From assembly GCA_965113315.1 (NCBI GenBank), contig OZ220366.1: DNA of 64,000 nt; one strand, given 5' to 3'. Each line of letters starts with the position of its first letter. Position 1 is the stretch's first letter. This stretch comes from Podarcis vaucheri. Taxonomy: Eukaryota. The position numbers and the translations under genes were made by a program. This document shows positions 14,841 through 57,469 of the stretch, piece by piece. The notes under the pieces were generated by a model that was given only the letters and a program-made list of their open reading frames with translations, ran no database searches and was not told the origin of the DNA.

Positions 14841-17763
14841 TCAGAGCACTCCTGACATATGGTTGTCAAGCCTCTGCTTAAAGACCTCCAAAGTAGGAGA
14901 CTCCACCACACTCCTTGGCAGCAAATTCCACTGTCGAACAGCTCTTACTGTCAGGAAGTTCTTCCTAATGTTTAGGTGGAATCTTCTTTCTTGTAGTTTG
15001 GATCCATTGCTCCGTGTCCGCTTCTCCGGAGCAGCAGAAAACAACCTTTCCCCCTCCTCTATGTGACATCCTTTTATATATTTGAACATGGCTATCATAT
15101 CACCCCTTAACCTCCTCTTCTCCAGGCTAAACATGCCCAGCTCCCTTAGCCGTTCCTCATAAGGCATCGTTTCCAGGCCCTTGACCATTTTGGTTGCCCT
15201 CCTCTGGACACGTTCCAGTTTGTCAGTGTCCTTCTTGAATTGTGGTGCCCAGAACTGGACACAGTACTCCAGGTGTGGTCTGACCAGAGCAGAATACAGT
15301 GGCACTATTACTTCCCTTGATCTAGATGCTATACTCCTATTGATGCAGCCCAGAATTGCATTGGCTTTTTTAGCTGCCGCGTCACACTGTTGGCTCATGT
15401 CAAGTTTGTGGTCAACCAAGACTCCTAGATCCTTTTCACATGTACTGCTCTCAAGCCAGGTGTCACCCATCTTGTATTTGTGCCTCTCATTTTTTTTTGC
15501 CCAAGTGCAGTACTTTACATTTCTCCCTGTTAAAATTCATCTTGTTTGTTTTTGCCCAGTTCTCTAATCTGTCAAGGTCGTTTTGAAGTGTGATCCTGTC
15601 CTCTGGGGTGTTAGCCACCCCTCCCAGTTTGGTGTCATCTGCAAATTTGATCAGGATGCCCTTGAGTCCATCATCCAAGTCGTTGATAAAGATGTTGAAT
15701 AAGACCGGGCCCAAGACAGAACCCTGTGGCACCCCACTAGTCACTCTTCTCCAGGATGAAGAGGAACCATTGATGAGCACCCTTTGGGTTCGGTCAGTCA
15801 GCCAGTTACAAATCCACTGAGTGGTAGCATAGTCAAGACCGCATTTTACCAGCTTCTTTACAAGAATATCATGGGGCACCTTGTCAAATGCCTTGCTGAA
15901 ATCAGGGTAGGCTACATCCACTGCGTTCCCTTCATCTACCAGGCTTGTAATTCTGTCAAAAAACGAGATCAGGTTAGTCTGACATGACTTATTTTTCAGA
16001 AATCCATGCTGACTATTGGTGATCACAGCATTCCTTTCTAGGTGCTCACAGACTGTTTGCTTAATGATCTGCTCCAGAATCTTCCCTGGTATTGATGTCA
16101 GACTGACTGGGCGGTAATTATTTGGGTCCTCTCTTTTCCCCTTTTTGAAAATAGGGACAACATTTGCCCTCCTCCAGTCTGCTGGGACTTCGCCTGTTCT
16201 CCAGGAATTCTCAAAGATGACTGCCAGTGGTTCTGAGATCACATCTGCCAGTTCTTTTAATACTCTTGGATGCAGTTCATCTGGCCCTGGAGACTTGAAT
16301 ACATCTAAACTAGCCAAATATTCTTGTACTATCTCCTTAGTTATTCTGGGCTGTGTTTCCTTTGCTGAATCATTTGCTCCAAATTCTTCAGGTCAGGCAT
16401 TGTTTTCTTTATCGGAGAAGACTGAGGCAAAGAAGGCATTGAGTAGTTCAGCCCTTTCTGTGTCCCCTGTTTGCATTTCACCATCTTCTCCTCTGAGTGA
16501 CCCCATTGTTTCTTTGTTCTTCCTTTTGCTACGAACATACCCATAAAAGCCTTTTTTGTTGCTTTTAACCTCTCTAGCAAGCCTGAGTTCATTCTGTGCT
16601 TTAGCTTTTCTGACTTTGTGTCTACACGTGCTGGCTATTTGTTTGAATTCCTCTTTGGTGGTTTCCCCCCTTTTCCATTTTTTGTACACATCCTTTTTTA
16701 ATCTTAATTCAGTTAAAAGTTCTTTAGATAGCCACCCTGGCTTCTTTAGGCACCTTCCATGTTTCCGTCTCATTGGTATTGCCTGACGTTGTGCTTTTAG
16801 TATCTCCCTCTTAACAAACTCCCAGCCATCATGAACTCCCTTTCCTTTTAGTATTACTGTCCATGGGATCTCACCCAGCACTTCCCTAAGTTTTATGAAG
16901 TCGGCTTTCTTAAAGTCAAGAAATTGAGTCCTAGTATGCTTGGCTGCTCCTTTCCGCTGTATAGTAAACTTCAGAAGAGCATGATCACTCGCGCCTAATG
17001 ATCCTTCCACTTCTACCCCACTAACCAGGTCATCAACATTGGTTAGGACCAGATCTAAAATGGCTGTTCCTCTTGTTGCTTCTCCCACTTTCTGGACAAT
17101 GAAGTTGTCTGCAAGGCCAGTGAGGAATCTGTTTGACCTTATGCTCTTGGCTGAGTTTGACGTCCAACAAATATCTGGGTAATTGAAGTCCCCCATTACT
17201 ACTATCTCCCTTCCTTTTGCATGCTTGGCCATCTGTTCCAGGAAGGCATCATCTATGTCCTCCGTTTGGCTTGGGGATCTATAGTAAACTCCCACAATGA
17301 GGTCTCTGTTATTCTTCTCTCCCTTAATTTTGACCCAAATGCTCTCACTTTGGCTTTGAGGATCTAAATCTTGGATCTCTTCACAGGTATACACATCCCT
17401 GACATATAACGCCACTCCTCCTCCTTTCTTGTCTGGTCTGTTTCTCTGAAATAGATTGTATCCCCCCATTATTACATTCCAATCGTGGGACTTATCCCAC
17501 CAGGTTTCAGTGATGCCTATTATGTCATATTTAGTTTGCTGTACCAAGAGCTCAAGCTCATCTTGTTTATTTCCCATGCTTTGCGCATTAGTGTACAGAC
17601 ATTGAAGTCCATTAATCATTCCCCCGTGTCTCTTATTTAAGGATTTTTTCCTCCCACCACTAGGTCCGCGTGCTGTTTGCTCCATTTGGTCTATGACATT
17701 TGGATGATCATCTTCATTAATTGATAGACTCCTACCTTCAGGAGCACTGTCTCCCTCCCCCAC
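14841..17763 (-). pseudogene. CR1 ORF2: APE endonuclease plus reverse transcriptase, two disruptions
   Basis: EN motifs [37 protein letters not shown] motifs [30 protein letters not shown]. In-frame TGA at 16393-16395 and +1 slip in the 9-nt run 15490-15498. Confidence 0.95.
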
Positions 17764-17768
17764 ATTAG

Positions 17769-18739
17769 TCAGTTTAAAGCCCTCCTGATGAGGTTTCTGA
17801 GATTTTTGGCAAAAACATTTCTCCCAACCGTTGTGAGGTGCAGCCCATCACTTGCCAGAAGTCCATCTTCAAGAAACTGCAGTCCGTGATCTAAGAATCC
17901 AAACCGTTCCTGTTTACACCATTTGCGAAGCCAGCTGTTCACTTCCACTATTTTCCCCTCTCTCCCTGGGCCACGTCGTTCAACTGGGAGGACAGATGAG
18001 ATGACAATTTGTGCATTTAGTTGCTTCAATTTCCTGCCGAGAGCCTCGTAGTCTCTTTTGATCTTCTGGAGGCTATTGCTTGCAGTGTCATTGGTTCCCA
18101 CATGAACCAAGAGGAAGGGGTATTTGTCAGTGGGTTTTATGATTCCTTGCAGTCGTTCAGTTACATCTTGGATCTTAGCCCCGGGGAGACAGCACACTTC
18201 CCGAGACATCTTGTCAGGCCCACAGATCACTGCTTCTGTTCCCCTCAGTAGGGAATCCCCTATCACCACTACACGCCTCCTCTTGGGTTTGGTCGGGGTT
18301 CTTCCGTGAGCTGTCCGTTCCAAGGTCGCCTGCACATTCCCTGAGGACTGACTTTGCTGCTCGTCTTCATATACCTGATCGACTGTAATGAGGGAGAGAT
18401 CCTCAAATGGAGTCTGCTCTTCGTCTTCCATGCTAGGGGAGAGGACCTCAAAGCGATTGTGTATTTCTAAGCAATCAGAGTGAACCCTGGGCCTCCTACT
18501 TCTTTGAGTCACGTTTCTCCATATATCTGGCTCCTGTGTTGGTGAACTAGACTCCTTCTCAGGGGAGTGCCCTGTCTCCTCCTTGGTGGAGACGGTGTGC
18601 TCTGTTGCTTCCAAGAAGAGCTCCAGCTCTCTAATTCTTTGGAGCGTAGCTACACGTTCCTCCAGTTGCTGGACTTTGTCTTTTAAGAGGGCAATCAACA
18701 TGCAATTGCTGCAGGTAAAGCTGCCTGCAACCTTTGGCA
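17769..18739 (-). CDS. CR1 ORF1p, N-terminally truncated: CxxC, coiled coil and SGNH/GDSL esterase domain
   Basis: FTCSNC followed by the heptad [19 protein letters not shown] blocks GDSLL, PGA, HVGTND, DGLHL. Ends RRALN-stop. Confidence 0.9.
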
Positions 18740-20119
18740 ATGCTATCCTTCTGCTTATATAGTCCTGCTCCAGCTCTTGACTATGCTGGAACATAGCTAT
18801 GCCACACCACATATCTATATATAATGTTCTATACACAGGATCTGGAGATTCTAATTGTTCCTTCTCAAAGTCTGGCAATGCACTCTGAGAAAGAATGGAA
18901 GTTCTTCCCAGACTGGTTATAGTCTAATTTTTTCTCATTAAGAAACTAGCAATGACACTGAAATTTAGTGCACTGAAATTCAGTAATATGGAACAAACAA
19001 ATAGCAAATGTATGAATTGCTCTTGCATCCTTACAAACTGAGTTGAGCCCAAACTCTAATGGTGGTCAGATCTTGATAAGAATCAGTTCACCAGGATCTT
19101 CATAGGTCACTGTTCACCCCAACAACCCCTTTCCCTGGTAACAGCAAAAGAAGAGAACACATTAGAGCTATTTCTGTGATGGCTCCATCCCTTCTATCTT
19201 ATCTCTGGTGAGTTGAATGTCGCGACAGCAGAGGCCAGGCATAAGGAGTTGAGGGACACATGATTTTCAGGCTAACTGACATCCGCTATAAGCACTTGAA
19301 TAACCTAATTCCTAGAATCTCTGCCAGCAGCATTCTCCTTGCAGCATTCTCACAAAGCACTCACAAAGAAGCCTCCAGCGGGACTTTCTCATTGCTGCCA
19401 CCAGGAATGTTTTAGACAAAGAGAAGGTTTTAGCAGGATAAGTTTCAGGGTCTTGTGGAAGGAGTTGCTTATAACTCACCATGCTGCCAATTATGGAACT
19501 AAGAGCAGAAAGAAGTTATTTTTTCAATGGGTGTGTGTGGAAACCACCCATTATTGTATAAGAAATAAGTTCTACAGTACTAGCAGAACTCATTCCATCT
19601 GATGGCCTGCAATCTCACAGCTTTCACCTAGGATTGAGATATTTGCTCAAGAATAATAGTAAATGACTAGGTTGCTCACATCAAGGTGTTGAGGGATCCT
19701 CCAAAGATGCCAGTACCTTTCCTCCTTCTTCCTAGGACACAATTATATTTATCTGTACTGATGGGAGCAATACTGCTAAAAGATCTATGTACAAGCAATG
19801 GCAGCCTGAGGAATTTTGCTGCCTGAAACAGAACCCAAATGATACTCTCCACAGCCTTAGGGCTAATGCTCCTGCCTATTCCTGATGATGCTGATGCCTG
19901 AAAGGCCTGTTCATGAAAGGGCTGGCCCTGTGTTCAAGCAGTTTAGTGTTTACCTGCACTGCAGCAAATACTGTCTTTTTAACATGGTAACACACTAGCA
20001 GGGTGATTCATGACATTCATTGACATCAGAGCAGAACTAAGGCTCATAGCATTAAAATGCTCTCACAGCTGGCTCTTGCTGGCTCAACATCTTTGCTTCC
20101 CAGTACTGCCTGAAACAGC

Positions 20120-35736: not shown

Positions 35737-38625
35737 AAAGTGGTAGGGACAAACGATTATGTCACAAGTAGGAAGGCTTGAGAAATTTGAGTTTTGTGAA
35801 TGCCACTTCAGTCTGACCTAATCTGCACTGACCCTTCCACACTGGAATGAATTTATCATTCTGATTTCGCAATACTCTCAGATTTTCAATGCAGTTCCTG
35901 GCTCAAAAAAAATCTACCAGCAGAATGCATTACAAATGCATTTGGTCAAATGTATTTAGAAATACATACACTGAGATACATATCTGGATATGTATTTTGT
36001 GACAAAATACTTATTGCAGTATATATTTTAAAATGTGTCTTGATATGGACTGATCTGTCTGTCTCGTTAATTGTACCTAAATTTATTTGTGAGGAAGGGA
36101 GAACATGGCATCAGTCGGACAGCAGCCTCATGTGTGTGTTTTTTGAGCAGTGCAGAGGTGAGGTGGGCCCTCAGCAGTACTTGGCGAAATCCATGCTGGG
36201 CTTAGGCTGCAGACTACATGAAAGTAGAGCTCAGATGTTGCTTCATCAACAGTCATCCTCAGCCTGAGCCTTAAATAGGAGCTGCCTGTGCATGTCAGCT
36301 GCTAGCTCTGCTTTTGGTGAGAGGATTCTCTTCATTTAATGGGCCCACAGGATATTATGATTTCACCAGGAACTTTGGCTGGAGAGGTACTGCCACAATG
36401 AGTTCCTCTTGCAGAAGTGCTTCTTGTTGGTTTTGCACATCTGTGGCTGGGCCTGAGGGCTTGTTCCTCTCCCATTCCTCTTACTCCCTATACTACTTCA
36501 TCATTTGATGGTGTGTACAGGTTCTAACCAGTACTGGTTTGTCATTCTGCATTTTTGAAAGTATGCTGTTTTAGAACATAGCCCAATATAAAAGTCCCCC
36601 CCCCCGTACCAGTGCTCATTTAGTAGTATTCATGGAAGAGGATTTTTATTTTATTTTAAAAAAGCTAATTTTGGAATTTCTTTTTTTTAAAAAAAATGCA
36701 TTGAGTGCTCATTAAAACAACAGATTAAATCACTTCTCTTCGAGACAGATGTAAAAGACAGGTGCTGTATAATCTGACACAAGCTCTGTAAATATATGTT
36801 TGTTTTGATCATCAGTGCCACTCGCGATCTCAGTTCTAGGATTCTATGGAAGGGAAATTGCTAATTGCACCAAAACTTTGCAGTAATTTGTAGCACCCAT
36901 ATTTGTGTAATGGGTTAGACCAGCTTTTCTTTCGTGCTTCAACACATCACTTAAACTGAAGGCTGTAAGGGGAACTGTAGGTCAAGATAACAATGGGGAC
37001 AGGAAAAGGCACTGGACAATGGAAGGCGGAAAAAAGGTAGGAAATGTCGAAGCACTTGTAAAGGAGACACAGTTTAAAGTACTGGTAGTCACCTGAGTTT
37101 CTTCAGCTAAAAATGTGAGTAGCACACTGAAAGAAGGCCTGGCTGAAATGAAGGATAAAGAGGGAGGCTTTTCACAGTTCACAGGTGTGCAGACAGGAGC
37201 AGGAGAATAGCGGCAAACCCAGCCCTTGACCTCTGCACATTCAGCTGAAAGTTATGAGCCCATATGCATATAGCTCTCTATATGTGTAAAGTTTTCTCCA
37301 TGCTGTCATTTCAGGATTGCATGATAGTATGGGGAATTGTGCATGCATAGGCTCTGCACCAGGATGTGCTATCCTGCCCACTCTCTATAGGCATTCATAT
37401 ATTTTCTTAAAAGGACTAAAGGAACCCATATTATGAGACTGAGGGAGAGGCCTTCCTCCTTTTGGAAGTTAGAGGATGCTTCCTGCACTTGCTAAAGTGC
37501 AAATATTCCATATATCCCAGGCTCGAGGTGGACAGGAGGAGCTGACCTTGCTTGCACAAGCCATTTCTTTTATCTGCTATGCTCATTTTTAACATTTATC
37601 TGGGGGCAAGAGCTGTGAAACTCAGACTGTGACTCTGTACACACTTATCTGAGGAGTAAGCCCATGGAAAACGGCACTTGCTTTTGAGCAGTCATGTACA
37701 AGCTTGCACTGTAAGGGTGCTATTTCATTTTCCTACTTTTGTAAATTAAATGAAAATCATATGGGCCAGAACTCAGATCTGATTTTTGAAATGGTAATGG
37801 CTGTGCTTCATTTTTTTGTAGCTCATTAACAGCATTCAGAAGCAACTCGTTGGGGTGACTAAAAGGTGTTCCTGCTGTCATTTGTGAAAATGCCCCAAGG
37901 ATATTTTACTGGAACATTTTAGAATGATAGGATTGCTAATAATTATTAACAATGCATTAGGTGAAGATGAAGCCTGCAATGCTATACACGTATCCTTAAG
38001 ATTAAGTATCAGTGATTTACTACTAAGTAAATGTGCATAAGACTGAGCTGCAAACTTTGTTTTGTCAGCTCACCTCAACATATGATGGGAATGATGATGG
38101 TGGTGGTGTCTGTGCAAGATGGAAGAAATGTAGACCCAATAAAACAGAAAGTTTTGGAAGGTTGCTCATTTGTTTCCATCTGTCTTCATACTTTCTTGTC
38201 GTTCTGGTGCTGTCTTCTTGTGACTTCATGCTTTCATACAAACACACACACACACATTTCTTTTATTGCTGCTTGATAACTGGAAAGTAGCAGTGTACAC
38301 AGTCAGCCCTCCTGGAGGCAAAGCTTCCTACCAGTTATTGACATGATGCCTGTGTTCACATGATGCTTCTGATTCAATATAAACACTGAACTATGGGGGA
38401 ATTAAAACTATCCTGGTGAGATAATTCCAAAAGAAGGAAAAGTGGCAGGTAATATTTTGGACACTTACTGGGTTGAAAACTCACCACCCACCACCTCAAC
38501 TAAGAAATAGATTACACATGACAAGGATAAAATAAAATACATAATACATGGAGGCAACTTGGTGATCTTAAAAAACTTGGTTGTTCCAAACCATTTTTGA
38601 CCAGCAGATTTCTTATGCTGTTGTG

Positions 38626-39247
38626 TGTCGAGGTCCCCCAAGCAACCCTTAAATAATTCACAATTCACACATAATTTTTGCTTAAGGTTTTTGGCATAAT
38701 TTTGGCCACAACTTTTTTAAAATACATAAATGTGAGTGGTTGCTTAGGCATTGGTTATGACTATCTGTTTCCACGCCCAGGGACAGAACTGACTTCCGGA
38801 TTCCAGCAAAAGCCAGTAAGGGAAAACAATATTGGGGAGAGCATGGAGCCGGGCACCAGACCCTCACCCCCCTGCAGGCTCCCGGGGGCTTGCATGGCCA
38901 TAAACCCTATTCAGGGGTACGGACAAAAGAATGGCAAGCCCCTGGATTCCTTTAATGGATTTCCCTTGCAGCAGCAGCATTGGAGGGGCAGGCACCGCCA
39001 ATCCTTACCCCTCCACCAACCAATTTTTTAACCAATGCCTAACCACAACCTTACAAGTTGTGACAATTTGCTACGCAGTAGGCAAAAACCAAATGGCACC
39101 AGCCAGTCAGCCAAATGGACAAAATTCCTATCAGGCCTCTGCCCCAAAAGCAGATGACCACATGACAGGTATAGCAAGGTCAACGCAATAGCCCTAGATT
39201 AGGGAGAGTGGGCGGTTGATCCGATGCACGCAGCAAAAGAGCCCAGT
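38626..39247 (-). mobile_element. LTR-like structured repeat, copy 1 (promoter end truncated)
   Basis: Collinear shared blocks with copies 2 and 3: taggcattgg, atggcc, cggacaa, gattccttta, aagttgtgac, gtagg, aaaattccta, tgacc. Superfamily unresolved (solo LTR or DIRS/Ngaro terminal repeat). Confidence 0.7.
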
Positions 39248-40965
39248 CAGTGATGCTGCTCGTGCATGCGCAGAAGTGCTAAATCACGCTTCGCATGTGC
39301 ACAGAAGTGTAAACCACTCCGCGCACATGTGCAGACGTGGCACTTTGCCATGTGCCCTTTTTAAAAAACAGAATTCTATCTTGAGGCTTGCAAATGTTCA
39401 AAAAATAATATTTCACAAAATACTTTTCCAGTGTAGAAACAATGCAGTTGGCAACAGTTGGAACAGAGCTACACAGCATGCAGTATAGTGCACAAACACC
39501 TCATCAATGCATGTGGAATTCTGTGCCATGTGTGATTCTGTGATGTTTTATTTCTAAAGGATTTTTTTCTATCAGAACAGAGCCATAAAGCATCATATTT
39601 CTGACCATTGTAAAAAACAGAAGAGGCTTTCAGCTAAATCATTGCTTTTCTCCTGAACAAAATGTCCTAAGCTTCATCCTCTCACAATTTTTGTTACCAG
39701 GATGAAATATTGGCATTTAAATGCTTCATTTGTTCTGTGAACTGCACTAGTAACATGTACTATTTTGACCTTTTCAGAATTTTGTAGTTTAATTGGATGG
39801 CTGTTTTTCACTCATCATCCTCTTAACAACCTCTCTGATGTCCAAGTGGGGAGGTAGCGCTTGACAAATCAAGGTGAACATTATTGAAATGAATACAACA
39901 TAATAAAATATAGATTTCCCACCCACCCTCAATACACCCTCGATTTTTATATTACTAAAGCCCAACCCATTTCTTTATCATTGCCAAATTTACAGTGTAA
40001 GCCTTACATTGCACCCCTTCCGTCCCCACCCCCATGAGCTTGTGGAAAGCAGCTGCAGGGAGGAGAGGGGGAGGGGTTTGAAGAATAAGAATAGGATCTA
40101 TTATGGCAGTTCTCTTAGATGGTGCTATTTGTTGCTGCCGAAATGAGGTAAGAAGACAGCTGTTTATGCAAATAAAATGTCTCGCAAATCCACATGAGAA
40201 GGTGTGCACAATACTTATAAGAAAAGAAATGTTCCCTCATGACCATGCTGCGTCTGTTTCTTGAATAAATCCCACACCCTCCTAAATTCCTATCTGCCAA
40301 CTTGTCTTAATGAATATGGAACTCTCTGAAAAGCCACGGCATAATGAATAAAAAGGCTAAACTTTGCTTTTACTTTGGAAAGAATGCATGACTAATCTAT
40401 ACTAGATCTAGAGCTCTGGTTACTTCAAAGGGCAGGCATTTTTGCTCACAGTAGTAGTGAGTTTGCAGTCTCTCGAAAGTCACAAATGTAATTGGGAGGG
40501 ATAAACTGCCCGGGTTTGAAAAACCTAGGAAGACAAAGCGCAAATCTGAAAATATTTTAAATTAAAAATGTAAGCTTTGCCAGGCAGAGAAGAAACAGCG
40601 GCCCTCCAGAGCTTGTTGGACTGAGACTCCCATCATCCCTGACCATTGGGGATGCTGGCTGAGGATGCTGAGCATCCCAATTGTCAGCGCCATGCTTTCT
40701 CCATCTTATTTGTAGAGATTGGTTGTGTGAACCATGCTAATTTAAAAGTGTTGTCTTTTTACTTTGGCTTCCTTTTCCACTTTGTTTCTCCTTTTTTAAA
40801 ATAAATAAATAAATATCTATTTTATCTGGATATTGTGTGAATGTGTGTTACTGTATTGCGCAAAGTTTCTGGAGCAGAAATTCAGTTTTAATATACTGCA
40901 TAATGCACTAATAGGGCACAGAAATTCCATGTGAATAAAATTGTTGTTTATTCATTATTATTGGA

Positions 40966-41742
40966 TTGCACCCCAAGGCCCCACAAGCCCTTTTCCAGTA
41001 AAATAACTTCAAACGGACGCATAATTTTAGTTTAAGTTTTTCGGCAAAATTTGGCTACAGCTTTATTGATTACAAAACAAATTGTGCGGTATTGGCCTAG
41101 GCATTGGTCAGAGACTATAACTGACTCCAGCCTCTCTGGCTGGCAGTCTGAAAGGGTAAACACCAAACAAGGGAGCAACATCGGTGAAGATCAATGGAAG
41201 CTCACCCTGGGGTTCCTGTGGTCCTGGCATGGCCCTAGTCCCTCAAGCGGACTTCGGACAAGATCCAGGACCCCCAGATTCCTTTACCGGAATACCCTAT
41301 TTCTAGAGGGACAGGTGATGGCCACACCTCCCCTCCCGCACATTTCTATAAACCACCAAACCTTACAAAGTTGTGACGATTGCTAAGGGGGTAGGCGAAA
41401 ACCAAGTGGCTAAGCCAATCTGCCAAATGGAAAAATTCCTACCCAGCCCCTGCTCCAAAGCAGGTGACCCAATCCAAAGCAAGACCAAAGCAGCAGCATC
41501 TAAAATACGGAGGGAGGACGGGTGTTTGGCAGCGCAAAGCAAGTGCCCCTACCCCTGTCACGCTGCCGCATTTATAGGTTCCTGGGATCACGCCCACTCG
41601 CCACAATTGGCCCAAACAGCCAAGCGCGATCCCAGGGCCCAACAGACAAGGCTTGGGCCACTCCTAGCAACAACACACCCTGGGGGGGGGGCTTAAGGGT
41701 CCCGAGTGCAACCAGGACCCTCGATTTAGGAGGATCCCATTT
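40966..41742 (-). mobile_element. LTR-like structured repeat, copy 2 (CCAAT, TATA and AATAAA intact)
   Basis: Same blocks. Minus-strand CCAAT 41606-41610, TATAAA 41571-41576, AATAAA 41062-41067. Right end gaggatcc.attt shared with copy 3. No clear TSD. Confidence 0.75.
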
Positions 41743-42382
41743 GTTGTTTCTTATGATTAACTGGTGAGATTGCATTTAAAAATTATTGTGCAGTGATGAA
41801 AAAGGAAGGGGGTGTCAATATGGCCCACATTTCTCTTAGCAATTTGGACCGCCATATACAAAGTTTGTCATTTTGTGCTTATATAGTTGATATGTGATAG
41901 CTTTTTAACTAATACTGAACTGTTTTTGTTCAACTTAACTGTATATATTTGCCTGGCTAATATATTTGCCTAGACTAATATCTATCTTGCATACAAATTA
42001 TAAGACCTTATAATTAGAAAGAACCTAGATGGACCTGTGGTCTGACTTTGTATAAACCAGCTTCCTACATTCCTAAATATCATTGGATTGACCCCTAGTT
42101 TAAATTAAGAGTGCTTAGAATTTGATTTTGGCTTGCAAACTGGATGTTATAATGTTGCTAGTCCCCACCAACCTTTGAAATTTAGTAACTGTTGTGTAGA
42201 TGTTTAAAAAAATACCAGAGAAGTGTGCAAAGAGTTTCTTGAAATTATATTTGTGGCCAGAAAGGTTTGGGGTTCATTTCACTGAAATTCTCCTGGGGCA
42301 GGAGGTTATCCAACAGTCTCCCGGGAGAAGGGCTCTCCATTAGTAATGACAGTAGCACATGGGCTCTTTATTCAAAAAGATT

Positions 42383-51086: not shown

Positions 51087-51222
51087 CAGGCTTCCTCAAC
51101 CTCAGCCCTCCAGATATTTTGAGACTACAGTTCCCATCATCCCTGACCACTGGTCCTGCTAGCTAGGGATCATGGGAGTTGTAGGCCAAAAACATCTGGA
51201 GGGCTGAGGTTGAGGAAGCCTG
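51087..51222. mobile_element. Young palindromic hAT MITE
   Basis: Perfect 29-bp TIRs and perfect 8-bp TSD GCTTAGCC (51079-51086, 51223-51230). Degraded relatives near 13460, 14680, 40600, 51425 and 61900. Confidence 0.95.
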
Positions 51223-55496: not shown

Positions 55497-56343
55497 ACCT
55501 GCCCCTATTCAAATACCCAAACCACGGCACTCCCCGCTTTGCTTTTGTGCTTCAAGAACTGCAACCACCCCCAAAAATGAAGACACAGTGACACAGGGTT
55601 TTTAGTTTAAGTTATTGGGCAAAATTTAGCTCACAACTTTAATGAATACAGAATGTGAGTGGTATTGGCTTAGGCATTGGTATCATCCAAACTATATCAG
55701 ACTCCCATCCACATCACGGGGAATCTGATAAAAGGGTGAATCACCACCAGAGGGAGCCCCGCCGATGCGGACCAACTCAAGCTCACCCCCGGTGCCCCTG
55801 TGGGGTCCTGGTATGGCCCTAGCCCCTACTGCTGGGTTTCGGACAAGACCCAGGTCAACCCCTGATTCCTTTAATGAAATACCCTTGAGCTTGGAGTGAC
55901 AGGTGATGGCCGCATCTCACCTCCCCACACATTGCTGATCCAATGCCTAACAGCAAATCTTACAAAGTTGTGACAATTGCTGTGCAGTAGGTGAAAAGCA
56001 AATGGCTCTGCCAATCTGCCAGATGGAAAAATTCCTACCAGGCCCCCATTGCAAAACAGGTGACCAACAACATCCATAGCAAGGCTAACACACCAGATAA
56101 AAGGGGCGGGCGGGCGGGCAGGTGATCCGCTGCGCAAAGGCAAAGAAGTCCAGCAAATTTCGCACAGGGATTAAATAATGTTTCGTGGCCACCCTCCAAG
56201 CCAAGCCATTGACTTTAGGGAACAAGGGACCATGAAACAACCAACCAGAGTGGAGCAGGGCATAGCCCTGCCCACACCAGGAGGTGGGAGATGCCTGGGG
56301 GCCCGAGCACAACGCGTACCCTCCTTGAAGAGGATCCGATTTT
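55497..56343 (-). mobile_element. LTR-like structured repeat, copy 3
   Basis: Same collinear blocks, minus-strand ATTAAA at 55638-55643, right end gaggatccgattt. No clear TSD. Confidence 0.75.
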
Positions 56344-57469
56344 CTAAATTCTGCACAGAATGTAGTTTACAGCACCTTTTAATACCCCCTCTTTCTACAT
56401 TACAGATGTAGGTGTATATATTAGGACACCATGAAGCATACTACAAAAACCTCTTTGTGTCTTTCAGTGTAGTGTCTTTTAGTGATTCTCATGTACGCTC
56501 TCAAATATTGCTAAATCATTACACTGAAACAAAAACCTGTACATGGCCATAATTTACAATCATATCAGGATTGCTGTTTTGCATACAAGCTCACTGGCAA
56601 TGCAAAGTGGCAGAAAGATGCAAATTAACTATAGAAACAGAAGCTACTTGGGAAACTGCACATGTACCAGCTTATTGGAATTATTCTTTAAAATTGCCAT
56701 AGTTAAAATGGATTGCAAGATTACTAGGCCAGAGTGAGCCTGAGGAGCAAAAAAGAAAATGAACATGGAAATTTGAGTCCTCTTGACTCACATGACAGGT
56801 GTTGCTTGGCCATGTTTTTACACTGCCCCCCTCCAAGTCTCATGTCTCCTCCCAGAACTGATGTTACCAAATTGCTTTGGTAGGGTTATAGCAATCTAAT
56901 TCCATCATGTTTCAGTTCCACAGGTCATTTCTGTCCCATCTGATGTGGTTTTGAAAGAACACAAGAGAAGTCCTCATTTAAATTGTATGCATTTTGTACA
57001 TATTTATTTACATACATTATTTCCTTTTTATTTAAACTATGCATTTCTCAATGCTTTCCGTGCATTTCTTTCCTGTAGAGTGTGCATGTTTATGCATAAT
57101 ATGTATGTTTGTGTATTTTCTGTGCAGTGAAACTGCATCACAAAATTGAGGGAATAATGCAGGCTTGCTGGGAGTTGTGTTTCCATGTGCCAACAAGTCC
57201 AGGGGTATCAGATTCCATCAGTTCACTGCAAAAAGTGGATGTAACTAATTCTTCCCCATCTCTATTATGGGGGGTGGGTGGAGAACCTCTAGACTGCAGG
57301 CCTAATTAGGGCACTCCATTCGGCTCGCAAGGCACATTTGGACAAGCCACGCCTACCTTCCCTACAGCTGCCATCATATATGACATCCTATACAAGGTGT
57401 TGGGTAGGTAAAACAAATTCATTAAAAACAAGTCTGCCAGTGTCTTGAACAGAACGGTGAGTACTGCTT

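Follow-up and report, generated by a model that had tools for sequence, protein, structure and literature searches.

Three diverged copies of an interspersed repeat in the genome of the lizard Podarcis vaucheri share an RNA hairpin with opposed U runs, here called hairpin B, which very probably belongs to a real, selected minus-strand RNA domain at the poly(A) site of the repeat. The window analyzed is a stretch of 64,000 nucleotides of contig OZ220366.1. We tentatively propose, as a possibility that we consider doubtful, that hairpin B forms a clamp on the poly(A) tail resembling the ENE elements known from herpesvirus and other viral RNAs, MALAT1, MEN-beta and the transposons of plants and fungi.

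Results

An abundant interspersed repeat in three diverged copies

The repeat is present in the window at three places.

38612..39259, minus strand: repeat copy 1, about 650 nt, in which the 5' ~200 nt common to copies 2 and 3 are missing
~40976..41778, minus strand: repeat copy 2, about 800 nt
~55537..56369, minus strand: repeat copy 3, about 830 nt

These copies are 72-80% identical in pairwise comparison, their flanks are unrelated to one another, and they are independent insertions of one interspersed repeat. Unique contigs around copy 1 end at 38679 and resume at 39266. A fourth copy was not found in the 64-kb window, either by nhmmer with a three-copy profile or with the covariance model R1 with filters off. 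In two genomic runs, the summed contig word depth over the repeat reached 2 x 10^5, compared to ~31 on single-copy flanks, and single contigs on the repeat had a depth of ~5,000; contig word depth is a rough guide only to copy number. On the basis of these depths, the repeat family is very abundant and has young members. Folding and alignment used the natural copies and the aligner's own output, three sequences in all, and variant letters in contigs and reads on the repeat were taken from the best-supported 40 of 407 rows.

Searches outside the window returned no credible relative. The plus-strand open reading frame (ORF) across the hairpin block gave no match in a homologous-protein search, and the minus-strand ORF of copy 3 retrieved from protein representatives five unrelated tandem-repeat proteins whose scores were summed weak matches. 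A DNA pattern scan gave no matches in viral contigs and six chance matches in metagenome contigs, of which only 28 nt fit the repeat profile.

The first-pass annotation had called the repeats retroelements, and this designation is putative: the poly(A)-site anatomy and the high copy number agree with it, but no reverse transcriptase or recombinase gene lies beside any copy. We infer a retroelement terminal repeat from that anatomy and abundance. As in a terminal repeat of the LTR type or of the split-repeat Ngaro/DIRS type, a poly(A) signal, a cleavage site and a GU/U-rich element of its own lie on one strand near the 3' end of the repeat, which is interspersed and high in copy number. A link to reverse transcriptase, integrase or tyrosine-recombinase genes was not found in the window around copies 1-3, ORFs close to the copies had no Pfam match, and the parent element was not found in the window. 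Beside copies 1 and 2, neither a primer-binding site nor a polypurine tract was found. The possibility that a single element is bounded by copies 1 and 2 was rejected, as they lie 2.3 kb apart yet are no more alike than copies 2 and 3, and a MITE was ruled out by the absence of terminal inverted repeats. The repeat end carries no terminal A run or microsatellite, and all three copies end in ...CA at the 3' side. The 5' end is common to copies 2 and 3 only and is not sharp, and no clear target-site duplication was found around copies 1-3.

Other parts of the window hold further repeats and reading frames. Dispersed pairs 81-91% identical, unrelated to the hairpin-bearing repeat, occur at 405-620/58510-58725, 8791-9134/61433-61775, 10981-11147/62207-62373 and 47737-48036/60952-61251, and an assembly gap (N) occupies 626-781. 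On the minus strand, 14841-18878 contains four long ORFs in succession, of 209-456 aa. A plus-strand ORF of 178 aa at 2078-2611 gave a sub-threshold Pfam match to DAAF9 (E 0.0014, 17.9 bits compared to a cut-off of 27) and could represent a host-gene exon.

Opposed U runs in a conserved hairpin

Hairpin B occurs once in each copy of the repeat.

41389..41444, minus strand: hairpin B of copy 2, with a 7-bp lower stem, AA and U5, CCA/UGG, a UGGC/GCCA apex, and U4 and CG
39076..39133, minus strand: hairpin B of copy 1, with a 5' run UUUUGU, a 3' run U5 and one A.C mismatch in the lower stem
55985..56040, minus strand: hairpin B of copy 3, with runs U5/U4 and the closing pair beside the U runs broken (C.C)

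The first-pass annotation had listed U-loop strings on the minus strand at 41389-41444, 39078-39131 and 55987-56038, and all three read exactly as given there; the UGGC/GCCA apical hairpin with a variable loop was likewise seen in each copy. The lower stem pairs UAGG with CCUA and reaches 7 bp in copy 2; above it on the 5' arm come AA, the first U run and CCA, up to the apical UGGC/GCCA. The 3' arm descends through UGG (in copy 3, UGC), the second U run and two variable bases to the closing strand. The second run consists of only four U in copies 2 and 3. The internal loop is bordered on its upper side by two C-G pairs, and the lower stem is headed by two G-C pairs.

The block was described in the same annotation as among the best conserved of the repeat. 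It is the best-conserved part, with a three-way identity of 0.65-0.80 in 20-column windows compared to 0.45 overall. The internal-loop bases (AA and U5 on one side, U4-5 and two bases on the other) are conserved as strongly as the stems, and the opposed U runs are invariant in copies 1-3 except for one inserted G. The apical loop differs in both sequence and length among copies 1-3, family contigs and RNA reads. The conservation of the U-rich loop in three repeats that was noted there stands for the block as a whole but not in every detail, with the run of copy 1 interrupted and a C.C closing pair in copy 3. As the copies are dead and decay evenly, the uneven conservation implies source elements that diverged elsewhere while this block stayed, and points to selection on the source elements.

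A predicted long-range helix at the poly(A) site

A complete poly(A) site of the vertebrate type lies on the minus strand of the repeat, composed of UGUA, a hexamer, CA ~21 nt further on and a GU/U-rich tract, and the repeat ends ~65-90 nt past the hexamer. The hexamer is AATAAA in copy 2 (41062-41067), ATTAAA in copy 3 (55638-55643) and a decayed AAAAAA in copy 1. UGUA is conserved in all three copies, after hairpin B and just before the hexamer. The minus strand is the sense strand of the repeat, as the first-pass annotation had it, with the poly(A) signal, the CA site and the GU/U-rich element all on this strand and G.U pairs that fold on this strand only.

In linear sequence, hairpin B lies 322-342 nt upstream of the hexamer. 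Nested helices, designated H0 to H2, begin 4-5 nt past hairpin B and pair with the poly(A)-signal region, looping out ~300 nt. In H0, GCAA pairs with UUGC; in H1, an 11-nt strand pairs with the hexamer's 3' half and with bases immediately downstream; and in H2, a strand of 11-14 nt pairs with the CCAAUGCCUAA block.

55940..55980, minus strand: 5' strands of H0, H1 and H2 in copy 3, beginning 4 nt past hairpin B; duplex -34.8 kcal/mol (z -3.1 relative to shuffles)
55619..55680, minus strand: 3' strands of H2, H1 and H0 in copy 3; H1 covers the 3' half of ATTAAA, and H0 ends 1-2 nt before CA
39032..39070, minus strand: 5' strands of the long-range duplex in copy 1; duplex -41.3 kcal/mol, z -4.5
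38695..38754, minus strand: 3' strands of the long-range duplex in copy 1, with the hexamer decayed to AAAAAA
41366..41383, minus strand: 5' strands of H0 and H1 in copy 2, the H2 strand being gone (8-nt deletion)
41044..41067, minus strand: AATAAA and the 3' strands of H1 and H0 in copy 2, H0/H1 being retained

The duplex reaches significance in copies 1 and 3; H2 is absent from copy 2, the copy with the best hairpin B. These duplexes support a companion claim of the first-pass annotation that the element contains long-range stems. The best-fitting CA is located 1-2 nt past the 3' strand of H0, which places the predicted cleavage site and the exit of the tail at the foot of hairpin B. Separately, the fold of the whole-element alignment contains a nested stem region at 41220-41272 (minus strand) in which TTGTCCG and GGCCATGCC form conserved blocks and several pairs vary.

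RNA reads from two runs of a sister species cover the repeat with few reads per position. Nearly all are less than 90% alike and aligned in part only, and hence originate from other copies, and neither read ends nor tails were reported among them. The libraries appear stranded, as the neighboring SINE is biased 2.3-fold. Transcription from the plus strand had been named at the outset as evidence against an ENE, and the reads on the repeat family instead lean weakly, by 1.5-1.7 to 1, to minus-strand RNA, provided the libraries are stranded.

Two neighboring stretches were also covered by these data. A fragment of a different, SINE-like repeat (40594-40666 and 51098-51170) has the highest RNA depth in the 6 kb examined (~90 and 205 reads per position, in two orientations), and hundreds of contigs continue from it into dissimilar sequence. 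Just upstream of copy 1 in the minus sense, another repeated stretch (39266-39400) shows a word depth of ~6,000 and one-sided RNA reads with the first mate on the plus strand ~5 to 1. At position 39296, the letter of the window is absent from every RNA read of one run and from most reads of the other.

Covariation in an adjoining hairpin and strand specificity

A second hairpin, hairpin A, abuts hairpin B on its 5' side.

41445..41469, minus strand: hairpin A of copy 2, separated from hairpin B by zero spacer
39134..39159, minus strand: hairpin A of copy 1, bearing one C-G to U-A compensatory change
56041..56065, minus strand: hairpin A of copy 3, bearing a second C-G to U-A compensatory change

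Hairpin A has 10 bp, and every cell of the alignment (one base pair in one copy) is paired in all three copies, with compensatory changes at two pairs and one-sided changes at four. The two compensatory changes are independent and represent the clearest covariation signal in the repeat. For hairpins A and B jointly, 97% of cells are paired, compared to 35-49% when the partners are slid by 1-3 columns, and three pairs in all are compensatory. One sixth of the cells (12 of 72) are G.U; they occur in both hairpins and would be mismatches on the plus strand, so that the minus strand alone folds in this way. Within hairpin B, 10 of 14 pairs are constant. Of the others, a terminal pair goes from G-C to U-G by a double change, another is altered on one side only, and two each contain a broken cell. 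Because these stems are nearly invariant, covariation speaks neither for nor against hairpin B itself.

Comparison of hairpin B with ENEs

To our reading, the definition of an ENE given in a review (PMC7583470) and in the paper on the Evade element (PMC12501189) is a U-rich internal loop directly beside G-C pairs. The loop-adjacent G-C pairs make A-minor contacts and were found essential in the Evade ENE by mutagenesis (PMC12501189). ENEs typically lie close to the RNA 3' end, and that of PAN forms five U.A-U and three A-minor triples (PMC7583470, PMC12501189, PMC13541005). Transposon RNAs also contain ENEs, mostly those of LTR retrotransposons (PMC12501189, PMC7583470). The first-pass annotation took such an element to be undescribed in its host group; extended to vertebrates, this is too strong, as the review includes ENE predictions in stickleback retroviruses, its only animal transposon examples, which are computational (PMC7583470).

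Measured against this definition, the opposed runs of hairpin B are short, with five U facing four in copies 2 and 3 and UUUUGU facing five in copy 1, so that at most four contiguous U.A-U triples could form in copies 2 and 3. G-C pairs immediately beside the loop were not found on the lower side in any copy, where the 5' strand has AA and the 3' strand has CG, UG or CA as spacers. The upper side has two adjacent C-G pairs in copies 1 and 2, the first of which is C.C in copy 3. As for closeness to the tail, a full poly(A) site is present on the same strand 322-342 nt downstream and is brought nearer by the predicted helix, which is significant in two of the three copies. Comparison with ENE covariance models, as proposed in the first-pass annotation, gave no Rfam 15 match in the window at the gathering score, and over 40900-41600 even an E limit of 10 yielded no related family. 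This blank is weak evidence.

The identification as an ENE put forward there is therefore only partly sustained. In its favor are a conserved hairpin with opposed U runs on the sense strand, a fold specific to the minus strand, the covariation in hairpin A and a helix that places the predicted poly(A) site at the base of hairpin B. Against it are lower G-C pairs two non-U bases away from the runs, a different predicted fold in two of the three copies, stems with one terminal double change, and the Rfam result. With its lower G-C pairs not adjacent, its short loop and no Rfam match, hairpin B was not accepted as an ENE proper.

Known ENEs resemble hairpin B to varying degrees. The KSHV PAN ENE likewise has an internal loop of opposed U runs with G-C pairs in the flanking stems, and it lies upstream of the tail in a polyadenylated RNA (PMC7583470), a position that is predicted for hairpin B. 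Its five U.A-U and three A-minor triples form on an adjacent lower stem, whereas hairpin B would allow at most four to five triples and has two-base spacers on each strand; the two have no sequence or covariance-model similarity. The ENEs of plant and fungal transposons (rice TWIFB1; Arabidopsis Copia93/Evade) also lie in the 3' untranslated part of the element RNA and are a proposed guard against deadenylation (PMC12501189, PMC7583470). They are mostly double-domain and near the 3' end, in contrast to hairpin B, which is found in an animal host at a distance of ~330 nt from the signal, approaching it only via the predicted helix. MALAT1 and MEN-beta share with the repeat a U-rich internal loop in a vertebrate RNA, which in their case captures an A-rich 3' end. 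Their loops are longer and interrupted by C/G, and bind a genomic A-rich tract after RNase P cleavage, leaving a blunt end. The repeat differs from these in having an ordinary poly(A) signal and, by Rfam scan, no tRNA-like structure.

Discussion

A candidate tail clamp

An ENE-like clamp is, in our view, the single mechanism that might best explain the conserved opposed U runs, the G-C flanks and the placement at the origin of the tail, but it is an explanation that we hold only tentatively and regard as rather less than probable. The departures from the ENE definition and the number of copies, only three and all decayed, keep our estimate at this level. In the proposed scheme, the sense transcript would form a three-part junction, with hairpin A on the 5' side of hairpin B and H0-H2 following its 3' end. 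By looping out ~300 nt, H0-H2 would bring the cleavage CA to the foot of hairpin B, and the poly(A) tail would leave the junction at this point. Its initial A residues would follow the G-C-rich lower stem upward; the four or five after these would be clamped by Watson-Crick pairing to the 3' U run and Hoogsteen pairing to the 5' U run. Such a clamp would slow deadenylation of the RNA of the element. Because two non-U bases on each strand part the U runs from the lower stem, the clamp would be a variant and not a canonical ENE. Within this scheme, we infer the production of the RNA, its polyadenylation at the predicted site and every step of tail binding.

Other explanations of the conserved loop

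An upstream polyadenylation enhancer was considered as an alternative. According to this explanation, the single-stranded U runs and UGUA would be a U-rich element folded to the hexamer, where cleavage and polyadenylation factors would be drawn in. Its action would precede cleavage and would not involve the tail, and the poly(A) site would be used efficiently when the upstream part of the repeat is in the RNA. The complete poly(A)-site anatomy suits such a role, as do the long-range helix linking hairpin B to the hexamer region and the retention of UGUA in every copy after hairpin B and before the hexamer. There is precedent in retroviruses. In HIV-1 an upstream element in U3 is brought near by the TAR fold, and in HTLV-1 the Rex-response fold bridges the signal and the cleavage site; in both, an RNA fold in the terminal repeat unites distant parts of the poly(A) region, and the upstream sequence is U-rich. 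These elements differ from hairpin B in that they lack opposed U runs within a closed internal loop. An enhancer would need neither opposed runs nor closure of the loop by G-C pairs, although both are conserved, and H1 buries half of the hexamer, which is expected to hinder use of the site. We consider this explanation unlikely.

The hairpin may also be real while its U-rich loop has no function, the facing U runs being a chance feature of one arm in a larger 3' domain, picked out because patterns of this kind were sought. A descriptor was composed that requires a lower stem of 5 bp or more with a closing G-C pair, 0-2 nt of spacer, two runs of four or more U and an upper stem of at least three Watson-Crick pairs. 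In a scan of both strands of the 64 kb, copy 2 was the sole match, and dinucleotide shuffles gave 0.15 matches per window, a chance rate that amounts to many occurrences genome-wide; with zero spacer the descriptor had no match in the window. A G within the 5' U run disqualifies copy 1 and a C.C closing pair disqualifies copy 3, so the motif is violated in two of three copies. The presence of the motif in common among the copies reflects shared descent and not three independent occurrences.

Folding predictions are mixed and tell in part against the ENE-like clamp. Hairpin B is the minimum-energy structure in copy 2 only, with pair probabilities of 0.7-1.0. It lies 6-7 kcal/mol above the minimum in copies 1 and 3, and its pair probabilities are at most 0.03 when copy 1 is folded alone. 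It competes with a small hairpin in which GGA/UCC closes the 5' U run and which is favored in the local alignment fold; over the whole element, RNAalifold chooses hairpin B. Fold z-scores are weak, from -1.2 to +0.3 for hairpin B alone and at best -2.1 together with hairpin A (copy 2), and these scores favor a loop that lacks a function of its own. The loop bases are nonetheless conserved like the stems, with the apical loop free to vary, and the placement at a poly(A) site would then be a coincidence. This explanation too we judge to be improbable.

A protein-binding hairpin is, in our estimation, quite unlikely. Its contact surface would be the U-rich loop, and its partner the reverse transcriptase, recombinase or Gag-like protein of the element or a host protein, with possible roles in template recognition, packaging or nuclear export. 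Hairpin B is near-invariant, including its distal UGGC/GCCA, while other parts differ by at least 50%, and an ENE would leave this distal stem free. The adjoining hairpin A varies with compensation instead, a pattern that suits read-out of the sequence of hairpin B. We know of no protein partner of hairpin B, which counts against this explanation, as do the lack of any coding part of the element within the window and a position away from the extreme 3' end. Its precedent is found in stringent LINEs, whose reverse transcriptases recognize 3'-terminal stem-loops (PMC5135761). These stem-loops resemble hairpin B in that they are conserved, lie in the 3' portion of a retroelement RNA and occur in thousands of copies (PMC5135761), but they are located at the very 3' end, by the tail or terminal repeat, whereas hairpin B is internal and its repeat has its own poly(A) signal.

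Constraint at the DNA level is very unlikely. On this account, the block would serve as a promoter or enhancer within the U3-like portion of a terminal repeat, the TGGC/GCCA half-sites, the inverted CCAAT box and the GGAA...TTCC motif would be factor-binding sites, and the hairpin would be a by-product of palindromic sites. In its favor, hairpin B is invariant without covariation, the family majority restores a plus-strand CCAAT where copy 1 has a private change at 39106, and the minus strand has two further CCAAT motifs 25-40 nt ahead of the hexamer. Against it, the compensatory changes in hairpin A and the G.U pairs in both hairpins point to RNA, the spacing between half-sites is 3-4 nt compared to 5 in the NFI consensus, and the lower stem and U runs match no factor sites known to us.

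Implications for the repeat family

Whether or not hairpin B acts as an ENE, it forms with hairpin A and the poly(A)-signal helix a junction that represents a compact and testable RNA signal, in a family whose replication signals are undescribed. That squamates harbor a family of thousands of copies with a working single-domain ENE variant, having two-base spacers and delivered to its target by a ~300-nt helix, is a proposal on which we place little confidence. If it were true, this would be the first ENE tested in any amniote transposon, with a "bridged" layout that is new for ENEs. The accepted geometry of ENEs would then widen to include loop-side spacers and delivery by a long-range helix, and animal transposons too would use a tail clamp against deadenylation.
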